Source: Styela clava (lineage: Eukaryota). From it: a stretch of DNA of 64,000 nucleotides. The stretch is taken from NCBI RefSeq assembly GCF_964204865.1, contig NC_135250.1, positions 7,936,001 to 8,000,000 on the forward strand. The letters are read 5' to 3'. Positions 43 to 10,244 of the stretch are shown one piece after another; the first letter of the stretch is position 1, and each line of letters begins with the position of its first letter. A model generated the notes under the pieces. That model made no database searches. It was not told where the DNA came from and worked only from the letters and a program-made list of their open reading frames with translations. Made by a program: the position numbers and the translations under genes.

Positions 43-3000
43 CTCTGTGATTTTGGATTGAGCACCATGTCTACACTGACTGAACTTCGAACCAGTTCAA
101 TTATCGCAGGAGGTAACATTACATTTTCTTCAGCACAGTATTTGTATATACAGTAGTTTGTAAACAATCATGATATTACATCATTGTTTCTAATTCCCAA
201 CAAAAGATTTCAGACGACCTCGTTGGATTATAACTCAAATCAACTTTTTCATTTTTATATGATGTCTACTATTATTTAACATAGTGGATATGATCAAAAA
301 AAATAATGGCTGATTGTATATGTGAATAAATTCGGACTAAGCATGGATATATAGTTCATATCGCCACTTGAATGACATCTTCCGCGAAGGGCCTACTGGG
401 GTGTACAAATCAAAATAAAGAACACATTTTAAGATGTCTCAGTAATAATCAAATATTTATATATACTCGTCGGTAAGCTATCGATAGGAATTAACAAACA
501 CAATGACATGACCGTGTACGAATGTTAAATAAATTTATACACAGCCTGGAATTTACTTTGATGACTTCATACACAGCAAGGCGCATTCGACTGTTATAGC
601 AAATTTTTATTGAGTATTGGATAAATGTAATAGCATTCGTCTATGAAATCTTTTGAGTCATAACGGAATACGATAAGTAATGATAAAATGCTTCCGATCG
701 TAAAATGAAATTTATATTTGACACAAATATTGTCACAACATTTTACGACGGAAATGTGGAATTTTACGAGTTATGTTCGATAGTAAGGTTGACTTATTCA
801 TATAATATACCAACAACGCACCCACTTAAAATGTTTCGAAATTCCCTTCTAGTTAGGCTTACCATACGTCCCGGTTTAGCCGGGACAGTCCCGGTTTTGA
901 CAAGCGGTCCCGACGTCCCGCCCGGTAGCCTTAAATGTCCCGGTTATGCAGCATAGCAGTCATTAAAACATTTATATATACAAAGTTTTTTTATTTAACG
1001 GAAGCATCCAATTTATTTCTGATTCACTAGTTAACAAAGGAAGGACTACTGTGTTGTTGTGTCATATGTATTATATGTTCATTGCAATAATTTGAAACCC
1101 AACGTAAACAGCACTGCCGATATCTCATCAAAAAGCCAAATGGGATTGTAGAAAGACGAGTGGCAATAATGTTTCCTTAAAACTTAAACCGAGCATTTAT
1201 GGGACCGTTATAAGATGTGCGCTCATTTACTTTAAAACTGAATTCATCATCATTCCGCGGATTTGCCCGTTTGAGTAGAAAGTCTTGTTGTCAAATTGTA
1301 TAAATTCACACTGTTCAAGTAACAGAGCAGAAATCATTTTGACATTATGAGTACAACTATTGCAGTATGGCAACGAAGGTGTATCTCTTATGTCGATTAT
1401 TGAAATGTTCGAATAATTGAAAAGTTATTCTAACTCTCAATGATATTCTGCTTTTATACAAAATGTTTTGCGACCCCGCGTACGAAATAAAAATATAGCT
1501 AGTTTTGAAGGCCGGTATCTACTCGCAAAGATATGAAAGAAGTTTCAGATATTACTGAGGATCTGAATCGAACCAAAGTTTGTTCGATCCTCACTGTCCC
1601 GGTTTTCTGTTCCAGATATATGGTAAGCCTACTTCTAGTGAGAGTCCACAAATTGCTTTAATTTGAGCCTATATAAGATTGTGGCCTCGCTATAAGATTT
1701 GATAAGGTTTTTCTGGCTCGTGGTACTTTATCAGTCACTAAGATATTTCTTTTATTTATTTCAAAAATTTCTGCGGGCTGTATGAGATTCGATCATCACT
1801 CTGAATTTTTTTTTGTAATGATGTAATCATAATAAAAAATGGCGCTCCGTGCCGTGGCTACGCTATCGCATGTCAGCGATCCAGTGGTAGTCATAGGTGC
1901 GGCCTTCGGCCTCCCAACGAGGGGGAAAGCGCTCACGCGCACATTTACAGCTTCCACAATATTTACCCAGGGGAGTTGGATCTGCTGTTGTAGGATGACA
2001 TAATCGATTAGGCCTACTAAACTATTCAACTTAATATACTATTTATAGGTGTGCTGGGTGGCACTTTGGGTTTTATTGCCCCTGAAAGGTTACGAAACGT
2101 TGAGGCAAAGCCAACCACAAAAGCCGATGTTTATTCGTGAGTCAAGTATATATATAGTGAGATTAACTTACTACATCTGTATTATATTCTTCAATACCCT
2201 TTTTCATACTCCACAGGTTTGGAATTTTGATGTGGGAAATTATGGCAGACGAACAGCCGTTTGCAGGTTAGGAATGCTATTACTTAACAACCATTATTCG
2301 TTTCAGTGAGGGTTACAAAAGATTGGAGACTGCTTGGTTTTTGTCCGAACAGACTAAATAGCATGGAAGTAAAATCCATGTGTCTTACATCCAAACCAGG
2401 GGTCACTAAATTACGGCCCGCGGCGTCCTTTCATCTGGCCCGCAATAACACGAACAAAGTGTTGTCCGAATTTTTTTCCAAGAGATGTTTCCCCAGAAAT
2501 CGACTTCGATTTTTATTTCGTAATATTGGCCAATCAGCAAGATGCAAATAATGACGTAACAACAAGAGAGCTATGCTTAAATATATGGACACGTTACGCT
2601 GAAATTCACTGTGGTACGATACGGTAACTCACCAGCAGGCTGGACCACGGAACCTGTTCGCTGATCACGTGATCAATATGTGTTTGCGAAAGCGCCACAT
2701 GGTGGCAAATTCTGATGACGTCATAGCTCGAAAAAAAAGGAATCCCTAAAGTCCCATAGTATCCCATAGTAGTTTTTGAAATTAATAAAAGTGATAGCCT
2801 TCTAGAAAAAAAATTCCATTTTCAACTACTGAAAATTTCAAAGCAATTGGTCCAGTAATCAAAGAGAAAAGCAACCTTTTAAAAACGTGTAAAAGAACAA
2901 GAACAACAACAACATAATATTGAAACGATCGTTATGTCCACTAACGTGTTCAATAAGCCTTTTCGCATCCACTCATACAGATTTTCAGTCGTAGTTGTGA

Positions 3001-6000
3001 AAAATACCTCATTTTTGCGTTTTTGAATGCAATTCGTTAGTTTTTGGTTGTGTTTCAGAAATTTAAGTATGAATCAAATAAGTCAATCATCACTCTGCCT
3101 TCTTAGGAGGTGTAGTGTAATTGCTTAATAATCTAAAATTATTCTAGGAATAGCTGTGATATAGTAGGCTAAAATTCTCTACCGGTACGCAACAGTTTTT
3201 TGCGAAGGATGCACTCTTGGCGCGTGCTTTCGGCGAAACTGTTACTGTGTACGTTTCTTGTGCTTAAATAAACGTCGAACGTGCATTTTGCGCTAATAGT
3301 ACTGTAATCTCTCGTGTACTGCTCCAATTTCACAAGTCACATTAACTTTTGTACTGCTCACATGCGGCTATGCATGACAGCAGTGTTTTGCTAACAGCTA
3401 ACCTCGGGATAGCTTTCTAGAGATGGACATCTTGTATATTTCTTTTTTTATGATGTTCTCGATCTATATTCTGCGATATAGAATTTGATATCCAAATCTT
3501 CAGAAATGTAGAATTTATATTGTTGAATAAATTGAATGGATTTCCCGACTTTTGTGAATTTATTGTATTGCATTGAAAAAAATATTTGTCCGGCCCGTTT
3601 CAACACAGTTTAAGTCATACCTGGCCGCGGTCAAAAAAGTTTGGTGACCCCTGATCCAAACGAACGTCAATATTTGCCCAAGTTCCGCAAAAGTATTATT
3701 GAATGAGTGGTTTCCAAAATGTTAAAAATATTACCCAATATTATCAATTTGTGCTTCCAACTGTATGACACAAAAATAATAATTTCTTATTTCAAGAGGC
3801 AGCTGATGTATGACTCCCTGTGATATATATGTAATATTCGGAAATAAATAAATTGATATTTAGAACTCGGAACAAATGATTATCATTTGCGTCAAGCAGA
3901 GGAGATGCGACCGAATCCGTCGCTCATTCCAGATGTGTTTCCGAATGAACTCTTAACTATGATGCAGTTGTCGTGGTCACAACATCCAATAGATCGACCA
4001 AGTTTTAAAAGTAAGTTCTAAGTTAAGTTGATTCATATAAGACAAAGTAATATTGACCCATAAGTAGGTATACTATTCGCAAACTTTTCTACCAACAAAA
4101 CGATCAAATAATTTTGAAGTGAAATATTAAAACTTCGATTGCATTCTGAACAGAACTCTCCTAGCAGAGTGGCCTATAACACAAGTGATACGGTGAGCAT
4201 TGCCAACTTTCATGACATTTGACAGATTTTGTCAGCAACATAATTGAGGGGACGCTGGCCCAACGACTAACATGCGCTTGCCTTACCGCGCTTATTCGTA
4301 CATGCTTCGAAAAGCTCGCTGTGTGTAAATGTTGATCCAATAGTCTTTTCAATATTATAAATTACAGACTAATATTATGAATACAGACTAACTTATGTTA
4401 GGATGCAGGTACAGTACCACGATCAGTTTGTAGGTTGGGTTGAGTACGGTACCGGTACCTGTTAGTGGTACACGCGTACCGGGACCTGGTAGTGGTACAC
4501 GCAAACCGGTGCTACAGTACCGTCATAGGATCGGATATCGTGTCAAACTAGTCCATAATGTACCTTAAAACACTGACATATTACGGAAAATTACTTTAGT
4601 ACAGTATCTCTCAGATCAGCTACGCCCAACCACATGCGAATGCAAAGCAAAATCGCAGCGTCCCCTCAAAAAGTGGTTCTGGCAGCAGTCTTCACGCTCC
4701 GTTGATTCGTATGAAAGTTGGTGATTGGGACTCAAAAGCCTTATCTTCCAGAACTACTGAATTGTGTAAACGGCAGCAAGTCCATATTCCTTAATAAAAC
4801 ATTGCATTAAGTTGGTATGAGTTTAAAATATGGTAACTTTTTAATAAAGATTTGAGATGACGGAAGATGAAAAGTTTGACTTAAGCAGATAGTTGATTAC
4901 TGTATTCCTATTTTCAGAACTAGATGAAGATATGCTTTCAATAATTGAACGAATTCAAGACTACAAAGGACAAGTTCGGGAGTCCCGAATTATAATTTTA
5001 AGATTATACGAATCAGTAAGAATACTTTTCTCACCCAGCCTTACTTCTAAATCATCTTATCCATTTCATGGTAGGCCAGCCATCAGGATATGTAGAGGCT
5101 TCTTCGAAGACCGATTCAAGGGACCGAAAGTCCCAGTGTACGCACTGATCTGTGCAACCAAGTCATTCTGTTGTTCCAACACAGTGGCGTACCCATGATC
5201 ATTGGTGGGAGAGACATATAGTTTCTTTTGAAAACTCCATAATACACACAATTCAAAAATGGAGAATTCTGGACAGCGAGCAAAACCTTTAAAAAAGTTT
5301 AAAACATGAAAAATATCATGTGCCCGCTCACCAGCACTCACAAAACAAATAACAAAGATCACAAACCTAGTTAAACGAGGCTTGGGCCAGAAATCGGAAC
5401 CAAGAGGATTTTTAGCCGCGAACGATTTCTGAAATATTTGTGGTAATGCAAATACTGTACCAGTATTGCATTTGCAAAAAATCTTTCTCATCAAAAGTTC
5501 ATATACAGATACAAAATATTATAGACCATCAATTTCTGTATACAGCATTCAAACATATTATTATCGTGTTAGAGGGAAGAAAGGTGTCGGTGAGTTCTCT
5601 AGCCCCACGACCATTACTTAGCTTATATGACTTGAGAGGCTTCCATGAGGGTGTACTTTGTAGACTCATATTACTGTTGAGTGTTGACATTTGTCAGCGG
5701 TTACCAACTACCTTTCGTTACCTCATCACACAGGTTATATCTCGCCATAACACTAAAAAAGTTTCAATGTAACGGTTTCAATCGTCCTCATGGATATATA
5801 TATATATCAAATTCTAACACACCATAACTTTTCTGAGTGATTCAATAGTCTTGCTGCACACTAGCACAATTGTGTCAGTGTGCAGCAAAACTCTCGAATC
5901 ACTCAGGATAGTTATCTTCACTCTTGCATCCTTGCATTATATGCATACGGATCCACCGGCACAAAGGCGTAGAAGGATGAGTATAGTTGGTCCCATAGAA

Positions 6001-9000
6001 ACCCAATCGACAGCACATCATAACTTTGTACTTTTCTTTCTTTACTCAGGTAGGTGGTCAAACGTCATCCAGTCTCGGGTTTCACCAGCCATGCGATTCA
6101 AGTGTACAAATTGAATCATCTGTACCACAAAATGGAGAAGAAACATCTCCGAATACGTCACCCAAAGCGGTCGAAGAAAACACAACGCAAAAGGAGCACC
6201 CTATATCTATGCCCTGTTTAGATAATGAAGAGAGCGAATTTTTCCTCCCTCCTCCCCATTACACACTACAGGATGATACTGTTTTTGTTTCCGATTCCAT
6301 TCGGGCTGTACGCCCTCTGACTTGTGGTAAGCGTTTACAGTGCATGACTAATAGGCAAGAGGACTACTTCGCCAGTCACTTCTAAAATAGGAAATTTATT
6401 TCAGCTATATATATATAAGTAGCAAACATTCATATATACCGTATGTCGAACTCATGCATTTTATTTCAGGACATAGACTGAAAACCTTACTTCAGTCAAA
6501 AATCTTTGTCTTCATTGTTTCCGTTTTTTTATTATGTGGGATATCATCCGTGGGAATATGGTTGCTCGTATCAGAATTCAGTAAGTAACTCAAGATGACG
6601 GTTGTAATAATACACAGGCTACTGCAGTAACTTAGATAGAAACACTAGCAAGTATGACGAAATACTAGTGCCGGGCAACTAAAAATTGTTGAATGGAATG
6701 ATTTCGACGGACATATCAAAAGCAAATGTGGATGGCGAGAAACACCCCCAACCTGAACCCCAGTATATTGCGGGTAAAATATGACGTCATATCTCCGCTT
6801 CAACGGGCACGAGGCATACGATCTTGGTATCAATCGTTAGTGTGTTTCGAGCCCGTTATTATGAGCTATCGCTCGAACCATTCGAGCGTATTGGGCGATT
6901 TAAAGGATGTTCCCCTTTTTTGATATTTTTCTGCTTTTTTCTCTGCAGTTGTATGTTTGTTCATTGAAAATTGAAGCTCGTAAACCACCAAAAATAGCTA
7001 GGGAACATTCGTTCTTTGTTTTGAGACTTCAGAGTAGACTTTGGACTATTCATTTGTCGTCGACACAGGGAATAGTGTTTATGACTGCGGACGAGAGTCG
7101 TCTTTTTATTATTGTTATGCAGTTGATTTCGGTTCTAAAGGGATATTGTTATATAAGACGTATTTGTAAGTTTATTAGGATTCTGGTAGCTATAAATCAG
7201 ACAAGGTACCGTAATGGAGAGTGAGAGCGATTTTGATGCAAGGTAAGTGCAATACCTGCATGCATTCTTCTGCTATTTTTTAAAAAAAATTCTCTTTATA
7301 TTCTGAGAAAATGATAGTTTGTAAGCTGACTGTGGCAATTGTTTGAGCAAGCCTCATAGCTTGGACTTGTTATTAGTAATAATCCAGTCGTTAATCAACG
7401 CAATTTTTCTTTTAGTTCTGGTGACGAGTGGGAAGAGACGAGTGAGTCATCTAGCTCCGATGAAGAGGTTGTCCCAGTCCCGGCTAGGCGCTATGCTGCA
7501 AGCACTGAAGATGTACCAGCTGAAGCAGCAGCGTCAACGGGCGGAATGTTCGGAGCTTCGAGCCCTCGGCGATCACGAGTTTGCAGGGTGTGTTCTGAAC
7601 GGGACAAAAAAGAAAGAGAAAGAGAAGGCAGTAGCAGAAAATTGAAACAAAAAAGGTCTTCATATTGGTGTGAGAAATGCCAGGTAACACTTTGTGTTAC
7701 CCCGTGTTTCGAGAAGTTTCACACCCTCCCAAACTATTGGGAATAGGAATCAAAACTTATGTGCAATATTGTGATGTTGACTTTATCAGAGACTGTGATT
7801 TTTGTTGACTTTGCCAGAGACTGTGATTTTTGTTGACTTTGTCAGAAACTGATTTTTCTTTTTACGTGCACCAAGGTGTTTTATGTACATACTGTGTAAT
7901 TCTTCATTTTCGCTATTATTATTTCGTATGCACACTTTCTTTTCACATTGTTTTTCACCACTGTTATTCACATTCTTTCAAAACTGACTGAATTTAATTT
8001 TTTCGTGTCATTTTTTACTCGTATGTAAATATAAATATCTGATTTTTCGAAAACAAAATTTTCAATTTTTTCGAAAATTTCTGCCATTTACCTGAAATTC
8101 ATCAGCCTACCATGACAATTTCATGTCAGTTAGAGAAAAACTGCAAATTTTCCCAATAAGGTTACACCTCTACCCTTCTTGTGAGTAAGTTTGATATGTG
8201 TAGTGTTTATAGTTTGTGTGTGAGTATTTTGTCTTTGAAAGTGGTCATTTTAGTCATATTTCGGACGAAATTTGAGAGCCGTAAAAAGTGTGTCAAAGCT
8301 GAGCCATGCCACTGGCTTGCTGTTAGAACAGGTGTGAAAAACTTAGTTTCCTGGTGCTGTGCTTGGAGTTGCCTTTCAAAAAAACCAAGAACTGTAGGGA
8401 TTGGGCCTATGGTTAGCTTTTGACAATTTTTTAAAGTTTGTGAATTTTGTTTGAAAACGCCAGGAATATAGTGTTTTTTCGATATCGCGGTCCAGGGCAG
8501 AAAGAGTTAAATTTCATTTTCCACTAAAATTCTAGTCTACTTTTGTTTCCAGCGATAAATATTATATATCTGTAGTCCTAATCGGGTATAGAAAATTTCA
8601 ATATTATCTTTGTCCTATTACGGTCAACTTTTTTTTAGAAGGTGGCCAAGCAGATCCGTACAGTAGATGCATATCAATCGGGGGAACTTGTCACAATTGG
8701 TATGAGCACGACTGCTCCGGGGGTTATAAAACCGGCTTATGTGACGGGGAGTTTTCGAACACTCAATGCTGTCTTCCGTGCAATGCGGCATGTATGAAAT
8801 ATGTGTCAGATTGTTTTATCTTATTTACTAGTTTGTTAATCATATTAATAAAAACCTGAAAAGTCTTAATGATATAAAGTATTGTTTTGCAGGTAAGGAC
8901 GCTGAAGCTAGCTATAAGGACATCCCCTGCGAAGAGATTAATGGGATTTGTAAGCATAAAACTAATTATTGCTCACAAACATACATTAAGGAAAAGTGTG

Positions 9001-9934
9001 ATGGTCCGGAAGACAGGCGATGTTGCCCACCCAATCGTGAGTGCGAGAGTATTTAGAAATGAAATATATACAAATATCTATATATTATTATCCCAAGAAG
9101 TTTTGAGTTGAAATACTGAAGAAATACGATGTCAAAATTATTCAGATAATAGTTATAGAAACCACCAAATATTTAGCTGCTAAATTTTCTAAAATAACTC
9201 TATTATTGACGCGTTCATTCATTTTTAGAAACAAATTACGCTCGTCTTTTCGATGATTGTATGATTTGTATATGTAACGCCTGTTAAATCGTAAATACTG
9301 TATGGTGAAATCAATTGATTTTATGCTGCCTGAAGATACATCGCAAAATATGCAGATCCGACCAATGACATTGACCAACGTGGTACCAAATTATTTGGTC
9401 ATAAACGCGGTGCACGCTTCAGTGGTAGCGGCTCAAACACTGACATATGTCTATTATCATTTCAGCTGCAGACACAGAATGCACAAAACGGGGAGGGATG
9501 TGTCAAAATTGGGTCGAATATACTTGCGTTGCTGGATACAGGAGTGGATTATGCATCGGTGGGTCCGCGATTAGATGCTGTTTGCCATGTGATACCAAAT
9601 GTAAGTAACTTACATATTTTTCTTCCTACCGCTAGTCAACTTCTGCCATCGTTAATTCTTATTTATGCTTAGTTTTCTTAATTTTAATTTTTTTCCGATC
9701 GTAAATCTCAGCATTAAATTTCATCGTGAACCCATACGGTACAAGAACGATAACTTCATACTGACCGGTACTTATGCTATCTTATACGCAGGCTATGATG
9801 ATGAAGCAATATTTCATGATCCGGCATGTGATAGTTTGCATGGGACTTGTATGGATAATACTAATTATTGTGCCAGTGGATATCTACCCGAAAAATGTCA
9901 TGGACCGGACTCCAGGCAATGCTGTCCCCCATAG
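43..9934 (+). CDS. RIPK/TKL-like protein kinase with C-terminal TM helix and four Cys-rich defensin-like repeats (5' part lies outside the window)
   Basis: Manually spliced, phase-consistent GT-AG exons: 43-112 (LCDFGLS), 2049-2136 (GGTLGFIAPE...KADVYS), 2217-2266 (FGILMWEI), 3864-4010 (MRP...W.QHP.DRPSFK), 4918-5015, 6050-6326, 6470-6580 (TM IFVFIVSVFLLCGISSVGIWLLV), 8639-8791, 8893-9036, 9466-9600, 9792-9934 (TAG). Total 1416 nt, open throughout, 471 aa within the window. Confidence 0.85.
854..1631. mobile_element. Non-autonomous hAT (Blackjack-like) element
   Basis: TIRs taggcttaccata / tatggtaagccta; 8-bp TSD cttctagt at 846-853 and 1632-1639; subterminal gtcccgg repeats. Confidence 0.9.
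2397..3653. mobile_element. Non-autonomous hAT (Charlie-like) element
   Basis: TIRs caggggtcactaaa / tttggtgacccctg; 8-bp TSD atccaaac at 2389-2396 and 3654-3661; subterminal ggccc/ggccgc motifs. Confidence 0.9.
2561..2956 (-). mobile_element. Helentron/HINE-like element nested in the hAT MITE
   Basis: Begins aacaagagagctatgc (CTTGTT end on the - strand with a small hairpin); sub-terminal inverted motif ggacacg/cgtgttc; second copy at 47932-48213; the homologous host sequence at ~44880-45110 lacks the insert. Confidence 0.6.
4200..4725. mobile_element. Degenerate fold-back/MITE-like element
   Basis: Inverted pairs ccaactttcat/atgaaagttgg and gaggggacgctg/cagcgtcccctc flank a gtac-rich centre; ends and TSD not resolved. 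Confidence 0.45.
6470..6580 (+). CDS. Transmembrane-helix exon of the kinase gene
   Basis: tttcag|GA...TTC A|gtaag; translates GHRLKTLLQSKIFVFIVSVFLLCGISSVGIWLLVSEF, a ~23-aa hydrophobic stretch preceded by basic residues. Confidence 0.85.
6750..8510 (+). mobile_element. Internally deleted piggyBac (PGBD4-like) element in a kinase intron; left end approximate
   Basis: Encodes the piggyBac C-terminal Cys-rich domain (CRVC...YWCEKCQVTLCVTPCFEKFH); right end ...ggcagaaagag|TTAA (8507-8510); no DDD catalytic core; left TIR not found. Confidence 0.7.
7214..7746 (+). CDS. Spliced mini-transposase: acidic N-terminus fused to the piggyBac Cys-rich domain (~119 aa)
   Basis: Exon 7214-7242 (MESESDFDAS, AG|gtaagt) plus exon 7416-7746 (tttag|T; SGDEWEETSESSSSDEE...RRSRVCRVC...FHTLPNYWE*), in frame with no internal stop. 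Confidence 0.65.
8639..9934 (+). CDS. Four phase-1 exons, each encoding a six-Cys beta-defensin-like module
   Basis: CISIGGTCHNWYEHDCSGGYKTGLCDGEFSNTQCC; CEEINGICKHKTNYCSQTYIKEKCDGPEDRRCC; CTKRGGMCQNWVEYTCVAGYRSGLCIGGSAIRCC; CDSLHGTCMDNTNYCASGYLPEKCHGPDSRQCC. Confidence 0.88.
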
Positions 9935-10244
9935 CTTCCTATAAGTTCTAAACTGGTATGTTCCAAGTCAGAGACTCGCTGTGCGTTTATGCATCTCTGT
10001 ATCATAGAACTGGATACGCAAGGCATTATGCTCCTCACAAAACCTCGTTAATGCAAAATTACATGAGCACAAAATGTTTAGTGTTATGAATCAATGAAAT
10101 AGAGAATAATAGCAGTGAACAAATATCAAAAAGGGTGCTCCCTGTGATACAAACAATTTAAAAACCTTCATACTAAATACCATGCCGTGACAAGAGTACG
10201 GCGCAAACATTTTTATGATACTTCGATTGTGTTATACTAGGATA

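Follow-up and report, generated by a model that had tools for sequence, protein, structure and literature searches.

The window analyzed here is a 64,000-nt stretch of the 377-Mb genome of the tunicate Styela clava (G000:C1:7936001-8000000, plus strand), and its positions 43-9934 carry most of a gene whose predicted product joins a RIPK-like kinase to defensin-like modules through a single transmembrane (TM) segment. From the N-terminus, the order is kinase, conserved helix, disordered linker of ~100 aa, TM segment and two double-beta-defensin units. On balance, we consider it probable that the locus encodes this 641-aa single-pass type II protein, for which we propose the cell-wall-sensing mechanism given below. 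As far as we know, the animal receptor kinases described to date are type I proteins, and those RIP kinases that have been described work in the cytosol and depend on adaptors. The original prediction, made from the letters of the window alone, did not recognize the architecture as described; in the open-access literature we found no paper on a type II animal receptor kinase or a tunicate transmembrane RIPK, which is not proof of absence, and automatic RefSeq models contain the architecture without remark and under names that mislead.

Each of the 11 exons in the window, all on the plus strand, has a canonical AG acceptor and GT donor, according both to our reading of the region and to a script test of the boundaries, and together they splice to a single open frame of 471 codons with its stop (TAG) at 9932-9934. 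The original prediction had these exons running in frame from the kinase through a linker and a hydrophobic helix into Cys modules, with DFG, APE, DVYSFG and RPSF intact and one hydrophobic helix after HRLK..K, and all of these elements were recovered. The exon at 43-112, which is the fourth coding exon of the gene and holds DFG, is supported by its AG/GT sites and frame and is identical to one RefSeq model (P0271) and near-identical to another (P0273). The end of the activation segment, APE and the start of DVYSFG are encoded at 2049-2136 (81% identical to the corresponding exon of a paralogue on contig C13), subdomain IX at 2217-2266 (splice sites and frame, with a counterpart in the same paralogue), and subdomains X-XI with RPSF at 3864-4010, an exon that on its own gives a weak PK_Tyr_Ser-Thr match. 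The next exon (4918-5015, 66% identical in the paralogue) encodes the conserved post-kinase helix at residues ~304-323. It is followed by the linker exon (6050-6326), which contributes 92 Ser/Thr/Pro-rich residues that are predicted to be disordered and are 29% identical to those of the paralogue, and by the TM exon (exon 7, 6470-6580, phase 1-1), in which HRLKTLLQSK precedes ~23 hydrophobic residues and which has an equivalent in the paralogue. The remaining four exons encode the modules.

The 10 kb directly upstream of the window (L005) were examined for the missing N-terminus, and three further coding exons were found there, 0.9-1.9 kb upstream of the window. The first (L005 8099-8280) carries the ATG at 8099, the G-loop GRGGMS and VAMK; the second (L005 8659-8881) carries the alpha-C Glu, within REMAIL, and the hinge; and the third (L005 8988-9092) carries HLDLKSDN, so that the VAIK and HRD motifs for which the original prediction had asked to look upstream are present as VAMK and HLD. 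An in-frame stop (TGA) stands six codons ahead of the ATG, and the sequence between the two contains no AG; therefore, no coding exon can splice in ahead of the ATG, and the kinase domain opens the protein. Spliced together, the three upstream and 11 window exons give a product of 641 aa that equals RefSeq XP_039262782.1 (P0273, 641 aa) except for a few allelic differences, an agreement far beyond chance. The older RefSeq annotation had two fused isoforms at this locus, both named 'RIPK3-like': isoform X1, which is this protein, and isoform X2 (XP_039262790.1, P0152, 640 aa). They differ by one codon, at a tandem acceptor (TAG|AAG) at 8639/8642.

Pfam matches P0273 with Pkinase at 146 bits and PK_Tyr_Ser-Thr at 141 bits (cut-offs 23.1 and 31.7; E=1.6e-42 for the whole protein). 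GRGGMS, VAMK, the alpha-C Glu, HLDLKSDN, DFG and APE can all be read in the sequence, from which the kinase is predicted to be active. With HLD at the HRD position it is a non-RD kinase, and its catalytic loop presumably resembles that of RIPK4 and ANKK1. The PDB sequence ranking is led by RIPK1 (2e-35), RIPK3 (9e-33), RIPK2 (3e-32) and RIPK4 (9e-27), followed by CTR1/ZAK (1e-26) and TAK1 (4e-22), and identity to vertebrate RIP kinase domains is ~30-34%. A quick maximum-likelihood tree places the Styela kinase genes in one clade (support 99), joined by Ciona (support 85), with defensin-type and Sushi-type genes (see below) as separate subclades. A larger group (support 99) unites this tunicate clade with invertebrate RIPK-like kinases and with vertebrate RIPK2/3/4/ANKK1, the last of which form a clade of their own (support 90) that excludes the tunicate genes. 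Because RIPK1, IRAK and LRRK are not represented in the tree and the placement of two long-branch plant rows is odd, we call the kinase RIPK-like and not an orthologue of any single RIPK. Judged by sequence, it is a Ser/Thr-type kinase of the RIPK-like branch of the tyrosine kinase-like (TKL) group, in keeping with the family first proposed for it; the RefSeq names of the tunicate genes are RIPK1-, RIPK2- and RIPK3-like. A Pfam scan of the protein gives the kinase only, with no death domain, CARD or ankyrin repeats, and the RHIM core [IV]Q[IVLC]G was not found in five family members, linker included. By its accessory domains, the protein thus falls outside the RIP kinase family. Neither transmembrane forms nor tunicates appear in a published survey of RIPK architectures (PMC9573974). 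The post-kinase helix at ~304-323 is well kept in the Styela paralogues and two Logan proteins, with the core ..YK.QV+.SRIQ.L.L.., and may be a dimerization or regulatory element.

The protein has a sole hydrophobic segment, with a Kyte-Doolittle peak of 2.64 (19 residues) at residue 425 in the exon at 6470-6580. No N-terminal signal peptide was found, the hydropathy maximum near the N-terminus being 0.12, and neither a signal peptide nor a further TM segment upstream reverses the topology. There are 28 Cys after the TM segment and five before it. With no signal peptide, one TM segment and 28 Cys after it, the predicted topology, and the only one to make sense, has the kinase in the cytosol and the modules outside. 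The charges flanking the segment (+3 versus -1) also favor an inside N-terminus. In the full-length AlphaFold2 model, the kinase and the helix at 304-323 are confident, the linker has a predicted local distance difference test score (pLDDT) of ~30, and the TM helix spans residues 421-448. The features read from the sequence therefore argue for the layout of the original prediction, that of a type II single-pass protein with a cytosolic N-terminal kinase, a hydrophobic exon acting as internal signal anchor, and disulfide-rich modules that would be extracellular or lumenal.

Four module exons follow, each of phase 1-1 and each encoding seven Cys: A1 (8639-8791, with the tandem acceptor), B1 (8893-9036), A2 (9466-9600) and B2 (9792-9934, including the stop). 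The modules alternate as A-B-A-B, which makes two A-B units with 28 Cys. Type A follows the pattern C-x6-C-x7-C-x8-C-x8-CC-x2-C and type B the pattern C-x11/12-C-x6-C-x6-C-x8-C-x7-CC. In an AlphaFold2 model of the ectodomain, made from P0272 with a 34-row alignment, the mean pLDDT is 86 and the modules are mostly at 86-98. Foldseek with this model gave no match significant by E-value, as expected for 40-residue domains, yet its list is largely of the beta-defensin fold: AvBD11, hBD1/2, platypus defensin-like peptides (DLPs), crotamine, crocodile and duck defensins, and tick carboxypeptidase inhibitor. A second structural aligner superposed 34-38 of 36-42 target residues at a root-mean-square deviation of 1.6-2.4 A and Z of 2.8-3.8 (hBD1, hBD2, CpoBD13, AvBD11 and crotamine), and each of the four modules matched some defensin. 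The modules are thus modeled with a beta-defensin fold, three strands in a sheet on a framework of six Cys, as their description as defensin-like in the original prediction would suggest.

Sequence searches are quieter. Among defensin models, Pfam on single exons gave only Defensin_int (E=0.03) and Defensin_3 (E=0.56), both under the cut-off and both on one exon, the first being that of B1; on the whole ectodomain and nine relatives, no curated defensin family covers the module. Profile searches of PDB with the modules returned only beta-defensin 106 (E=3.5) and platypus Int-DLP (E=0.22), and an ESM Atlas search with the ectodomain gave no usable match. A protein homology search with P0272, bounded by a word index and a length limit, returned one match. 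In UniRef, an Alligator mississippiensis protein (P0020) bears the name 'Beta-defensin'; over 94 aa, its identity to the A2+B2 unit is 49% (pairwise E=5e-23). A phase-1 intron precedes every module exon, here and in the C13 paralogue; beta- and big-defensin genes have a phase-1 intron ahead of the exon for the Cys-rich domain, and big defensins are reported absent from tunicates (PMC7203481). AvBD11 has two divergent defensin domains on separate exons (PMC9138766). With beta-defensins, AvBD11 and big defensins, the Styela modules share the six-Cys pattern ending in CC, the whole-domain fold match and the one-domain-per-exon layout, and AvBD11 has two divergent domain types in tandem as in the Styela A-B units. 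They differ in Cys spacing (C-x6-C-x6/7-C-x8-C-x7/8-CC) and in an extra putative Cys pair bridging A and B; in addition, defensins are small, cationic, secreted peptides, whereas the Styela modules are acidic and part of a membrane kinase. The ectodomain has a net charge of -9 and an isoelectric point (pI) of 5.1. Such a charge suits binding better than membrane disruption, an argument we use only weakly. As grounds for excluding an antimicrobial peptide, it holds for this protein and for one from another species (P0001) and fails for the paralogue and Ciona.

The fused design recurs beyond this locus. The paralogue on C13 (15.058-15.069 Mb, minus strand) repeats the entire exon order, with 49-81% identity for kinase exons and 57-67% for the four modules; the two parts are separated by one exon for a linker and one hydrophobic exon (Kyte-Doolittle 2.99). 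Its gene, LOC120338289, stays fused in the current RefSeq (P0002, 593 aa; P0151, 663 aa). Between the C1 and C13 proteins, identity is 63% in the kinase, 58% in the ectodomain and 27-29% in the linker and TM segment, the pattern expected if selection has acted on both globular ends. Ciona intestinalis has the full kinase-TM-four-module protein (XP_078494468.1, P0269, 691 aa) and a second fused gene (LOC100180162, P0296, partial). A 1,481-nt Logan contig contains an unbroken 421-aa open reading frame (P0001) that runs from the kinase C-lobe through linker, TM segment and four modules to a stop. P0001 is not encoded in the S. clava genome, where the best exon identity is only 60-72%, and therefore comes from another species; the contig is most likely spliced mRNA, because eight introns interrupt the same stretch in S. 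clava. Two further Styela proteins, P0155 and P0275 (681 aa), agree with the defensin-type proteins from the kinase through helix and linker to the TM segment, but have Sushi repeats as their ectodomain. Three kinase-TM-ectodomain genes lie within ~33 kb at C13:15036024-15068804 (Sushi-type on the minus and plus strands, defensin-type on the minus strand). In all, this small tunicate family has four genes in Styela, two defensin-like and two Sushi, and at least two in Ciona. A screen of the 118 listed kinase relatives (P0151-P0268) for hydrophobic segments found a TM segment after the kinase in Styela proteins only; the few non-Styela proteins with a TM segment have it before the kinase. From this recurrence we consider it very likely that the kinase-TM-defensin architecture is a genuine tunicate protein family.

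The modules also occur without the kinase, and their company there gives the best available clue to function. A four-module profile was searched against 1.84 billion representatives, and 364 of them have the module at E<=1e-3; partners and layout were surveyed in the best 150 of these, all scanned against Pfam. Most of the 150 are secreted and carry the modules at the N-terminus, a few are membrane proteins of type I, and only the tunicate kinases have a TM segment before the modules. The recurring partner domains in this set are mostly peptidoglycan-cleaving enzymes: Amidase_2 of the PGRP type (eight proteins), Phage_lysozyme2 (six), Destabilase and Tae4 (four each), VanY (three), Peptidase_M15_4 and Peptidase_M23 (two each), and C-type lysozyme, SpoIID and 3D (one each). 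GH25 was also met as a partner, as was an Oikopleura protein with M15_4. The layout, module first and hydrolase after, recalls the cell-wall-binding plus catalytic design of lysins. These associations, which are a clue and not proof, suggest that the module targets the bacterial envelope. Bearers of the module include a chytrid fungus (P0014), a salamander (P0006, four modules), alligator (P0020), Oikopleura (P0284) and many metagenome proteins, and P0011, on Styela contig C5, is a type I membrane protein with six modules and then a C-terminal TM segment. No tested member of the module family reached a Pfam threshold. The profile search found 38 module exons in the Styela genome. At the other module loci (C2, C16, C17 and C5), no kinase exons were found within ~10 kb upstream, and most module genes are therefore not kinase fusions.

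We propose that the defensin-like modules would bind a repetitive bacterial envelope polymer, for example peptidoglycan or its lipid-linked precursor. Such a multivalent ligand would cluster the receptors, the clustered cytosolic kinases would trans-autophosphorylate, and the phosphorylated kinases would start an inflammatory or NF-kB/MAPK-type response. Overall, the protein would correspond to NOD-RIPK2 or PGRP-LC-IMD reduced to one component, and its membrane topology would be that of the bacterial PASTA kinases. The original prediction had suggested an innate-immunity sensor; the peptidoglycan hydrolase partners of the module support that part, and the function itself is still inferred. A role as a microbial sensor is a substantial possibility that, in our estimate, falls a little short of likely.

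The nearest kinase domains are those of vertebrate RIPK1/2/3/4/ANKK1, which are cytosolic and have death, CARD, RHIM or ankyrin tails where the Styela protein has a TM segment and an ectodomain. The bacterial PASTA kinases (PknB, PrkC and StkP) have the same layout, with an N-terminal cytosolic Hanks-type kinase, one TM segment and C-terminal extracellular repeats, and PASTA repeats sense peptidoglycan fragments or lipid II, the class of ligand that we propose for the Styela modules. In contrast, PASTA kinases belong to the bacterial eukaryotic-like Ser/Thr kinase lineage and not to the eukaryotic TKL/RIPK-like kinases, and PASTA repeats are neither disulfide-rich nor related to the defensin fold. 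Pfam finds no PASTA repeat in the Styela protein; only the topology is shared, and we read the likeness as an analogy, a convergent design that implies no homology. PGRP-LC, too, is a membrane receptor of type II whose recognition domain lies outside the cell. PGRP-LC/IMD and NOD1/2-RIPK2 couple peptidoglycan recognition to RIP-type signaling, as proposed for the Styela protein, but in these pathways the sensor and the RIP component are separate and joined by RHIM-like, death-domain or CARD contacts, whereas Styela would have both on one polypeptide; the recognition domain of the Drosophila and vertebrate sensors is PGRP or leucine-rich repeat, and that of Styela is defensin-like. The Styela protein is a member of neither the PASTA kinases nor the PGRP-LC-IMD and NOD-RIPK2 pathways. 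Animal receptor tyrosine kinases, TGF-beta receptors and plant receptor-like kinases such as LysM-RLKs are also single-pass proteins with an extracellular recognition domain and a cytosolic kinase, and TGF-beta receptors and plant receptor-like kinases also belong to the TKL group. All of these begin with a signal peptide, place the ectodomain at the N-terminus and the kinase at the C-terminus, and so run in the opposite polarity to the Styela protein.

Several points weigh against the reading of a fused, cell-wall-sensing receptor kinase. Topology, ligand binding and kinase activity are predictions, and the flank charges in the C13 paralogue (0 versus +3) do not favor an inside N-terminus. 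For the fold, the Z-scores are modest, which domains of 40 residues would lead one to expect, and the Pfam defensin models all stay below threshold. The charge of the ectodomain ranges from -10 to +13 among the homologues compared, and a common ligand is not obvious. The remaining points concern the locus itself, which the current RefSeq annotation of this assembly, with models placed on the same 32,746,820-nt contig, splits at intron 6326/6470. One of its models, XP_039262790.2 (P0271, 432 aa), consists of kinase and linker, reads through the donor at 6326 and stops inside intron 6. The other, XP_077970960.1 (P0272, 233 aa, 'laminin subunit beta-3-like'), begins at an ATG at ~6455-6457 within intron 6 and reads through the acceptor at 6470, so that the hydrophobic exon becomes an N-terminal anchor ahead of the four modules.

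The transcript evidence leaves this junction uncovered. Nine runs were taken as RNA by a guess ('RNA?') and hold 24-50% of the words of window 4900-10000; the RNA evidence used here consists of Logan contigs of four RNA-like runs from three studies. In run X1, a 1,307-nt contig extending back over the kinase exons contains the splice 5015/6050, and 8791/8893 and 9036/9466 are also spliced; 9600/9792 is spliced in all four runs. No contig in the four runs lies on 6268-6609, which puts the splices 6326/6470 and 6580/8639 and any retention of intron 6 outside coverage. Among the junctions by which the original prediction was to be checked, 8791/8893 is therefore spliced in X1, and 6326/6470 and 6580/8639 have no contig over them. 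The 3' Cys exons in X1 are on contigs of depth ~88, compared with ~10 for the kinase contig, although contig depth cannot rank the parts of a gene. One X1 contig is unspliced over 8481-8794, from intron 7 through exon 8, with a depth near that of the 8791/8893 joint; upstream of exon 8 it offers no in-frame ATG (there is a stop at 8557). The depth gap and the unspliced contig are compatible with a separate or read-through 3' transcript, or with 3' bias. The unspliced contig may be read-through from an element nested in intron 7 or an alternative 5' end of a Cys-only transcript.

The nested element spans 6725-8510 and is a repeated, transcribed unit. Its two-exon open reading frame on the plus strand (7214-7242 plus 7416-7746) encodes 118 aa, and the C-terminus bears a weak resemblance (E=0.0012) to zf-Tnp_2, a zinc finger of the piggyBac type. 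All four RNA-like runs show the unit's own intron (7242/7416) removed by splicing. Contigs diverge at ~6725 and ~8510, which suggests other genomic copies. Read-through from this transposon-derived unit could be the source of the extra 3' transcript.

The strongest alternative follows the RefSeq split and has two genes at the locus: a cytosolic 432-aa RIPK-like kinase, whose mRNA ends in or retains intron 6, and a 233-aa module protein, whose hydrophobic exon would be a signal anchor or signal peptide so that the modules are displayed or secreted. The fused frame would then be an ancestral relic. Besides the two RefSeq models, the roughly nine-fold depth of the X1 3' contig over the kinase contig and the unbridged 6268-6609, the mostly secreted nature of the module family speaks for this arrangement. 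Against it, both split models read through a 143-nt intron (6327-6469) with a strong donor (GTAAGC) and a strong acceptor (a long pyrimidine tract and CAG), and the ATG of P0272 lies ~15 nt before that acceptor, within the pyrimidine tract, where its context is weak. Exon 7 itself lacks an in-frame ATG, and for this reason an operon or trans-splicing at the 6470 acceptor for a separate downstream gene was rejected. The older RefSeq release had two fused isoforms that differ only at the exon-8 tandem acceptor; the paralogue, the two Ciona genes and the contig from another species are all fused; and contig depth is unsuited to ranking gene parts. We consider two genes here unlikely, if well worth keeping in mind, and a fused mRNA from this locus likely. 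The locus may in addition give rise to shorter products, consisting either of the kinase alone or of the modules alone, anchored or secreted. The original prediction was to fall if kinase and Cys exons proved to belong to separate genes; the RefSeq split goes part of the way to that outcome for this locus, whereas across the family the fusion stands on firm ground. Here the current RefSeq release may have cut apart a gene model that is conserved.

Even with a real fused protein, the ectodomain could be an effector, that is a membrane-tethered antimicrobial or a shed module, with the kinase regulating trafficking or shedding in place of passing on a ligand signal. The beta-defensin fold, the homologous modules in secreted antibacterial enzymes and the cationic Ciona ectodomains (+13 and +6) would agree with such a role. 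The acidic ectodomains here and in P0001 are unlike membrane-active defensins, Sushi repeats on the same kinase-TM chassis in the sister paralogues suit interchangeable recognition domains better, and the conserved, active-looking kinase points to signaling; we regard the effector role as improbable. Least probable of all is a fused receptor for an endogenous ligand, in cell-cell, developmental or self/non-self signaling, for which one can cite the variable ectodomain charge, the Sushi repeats of the paralogues (a domain common in host protein-protein recognition) and the fact that vertebrate beta-defensins also serve as ligands of host receptors, but against which stand the mostly peptidoglycan hydrolase partners of the module and the innate-immune role of the nearest kinase family.

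Other elements lie in and near the gene. An interspersed repeat at ~850-1500 in intron 1 has dozens of genome copies that are 72-97% identical, such as those at C2:17353807 (95%) and C1:15505002 (97%). The stretch ~2397-3655 in intron 3 has apparent terminal inverted repeats at its ends (CAGGGGTCAC... / ...GGTGACCCCTG) and is a probable insertion of a DNA transposon. A plus-strand open frame ~10 kb ahead of the kinase start (L003 9764-10000, G000:C1:7925764-7926000) has a Sushi/CCP-like Cys pattern and probably belongs to a neighboring gene.

Taken more broadly, it is possible, though we hold it as rather doubtful, that tunicates carry an unrecognized class of type II receptor kinases, in which a RIPK-like kinase is combined with interchangeable ectodomains (double beta-defensin or Sushi) and the defensin-like unit is a recognition module for peptidoglycan or lipid II. 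If true, RIP-kinase immune signaling once existed as a one-component transmembrane sensor, eukaryotes make wide use of the beta-defensin fold to target cell walls, and tunicates and vertebrates have an ancient double-defensin unit in common. Tunicates are the sister group of vertebrates. The family would add a receptor class at the base of the vertebrate lineage. The analysis places beta-defensin-like domains in tunicates and links the fold to peptidoglycan-degrading enzymes across eukaryotes, which gives the testable idea that the ancestral role of the beta-defensin fold was to bind the bacterial cell wall. The kinase-TM family would be a natural experiment in which pathogen sensing and RIP-type signaling stand on one polypeptide, and because Ciona is genetically tractable, the hypothesis is open to direct test.

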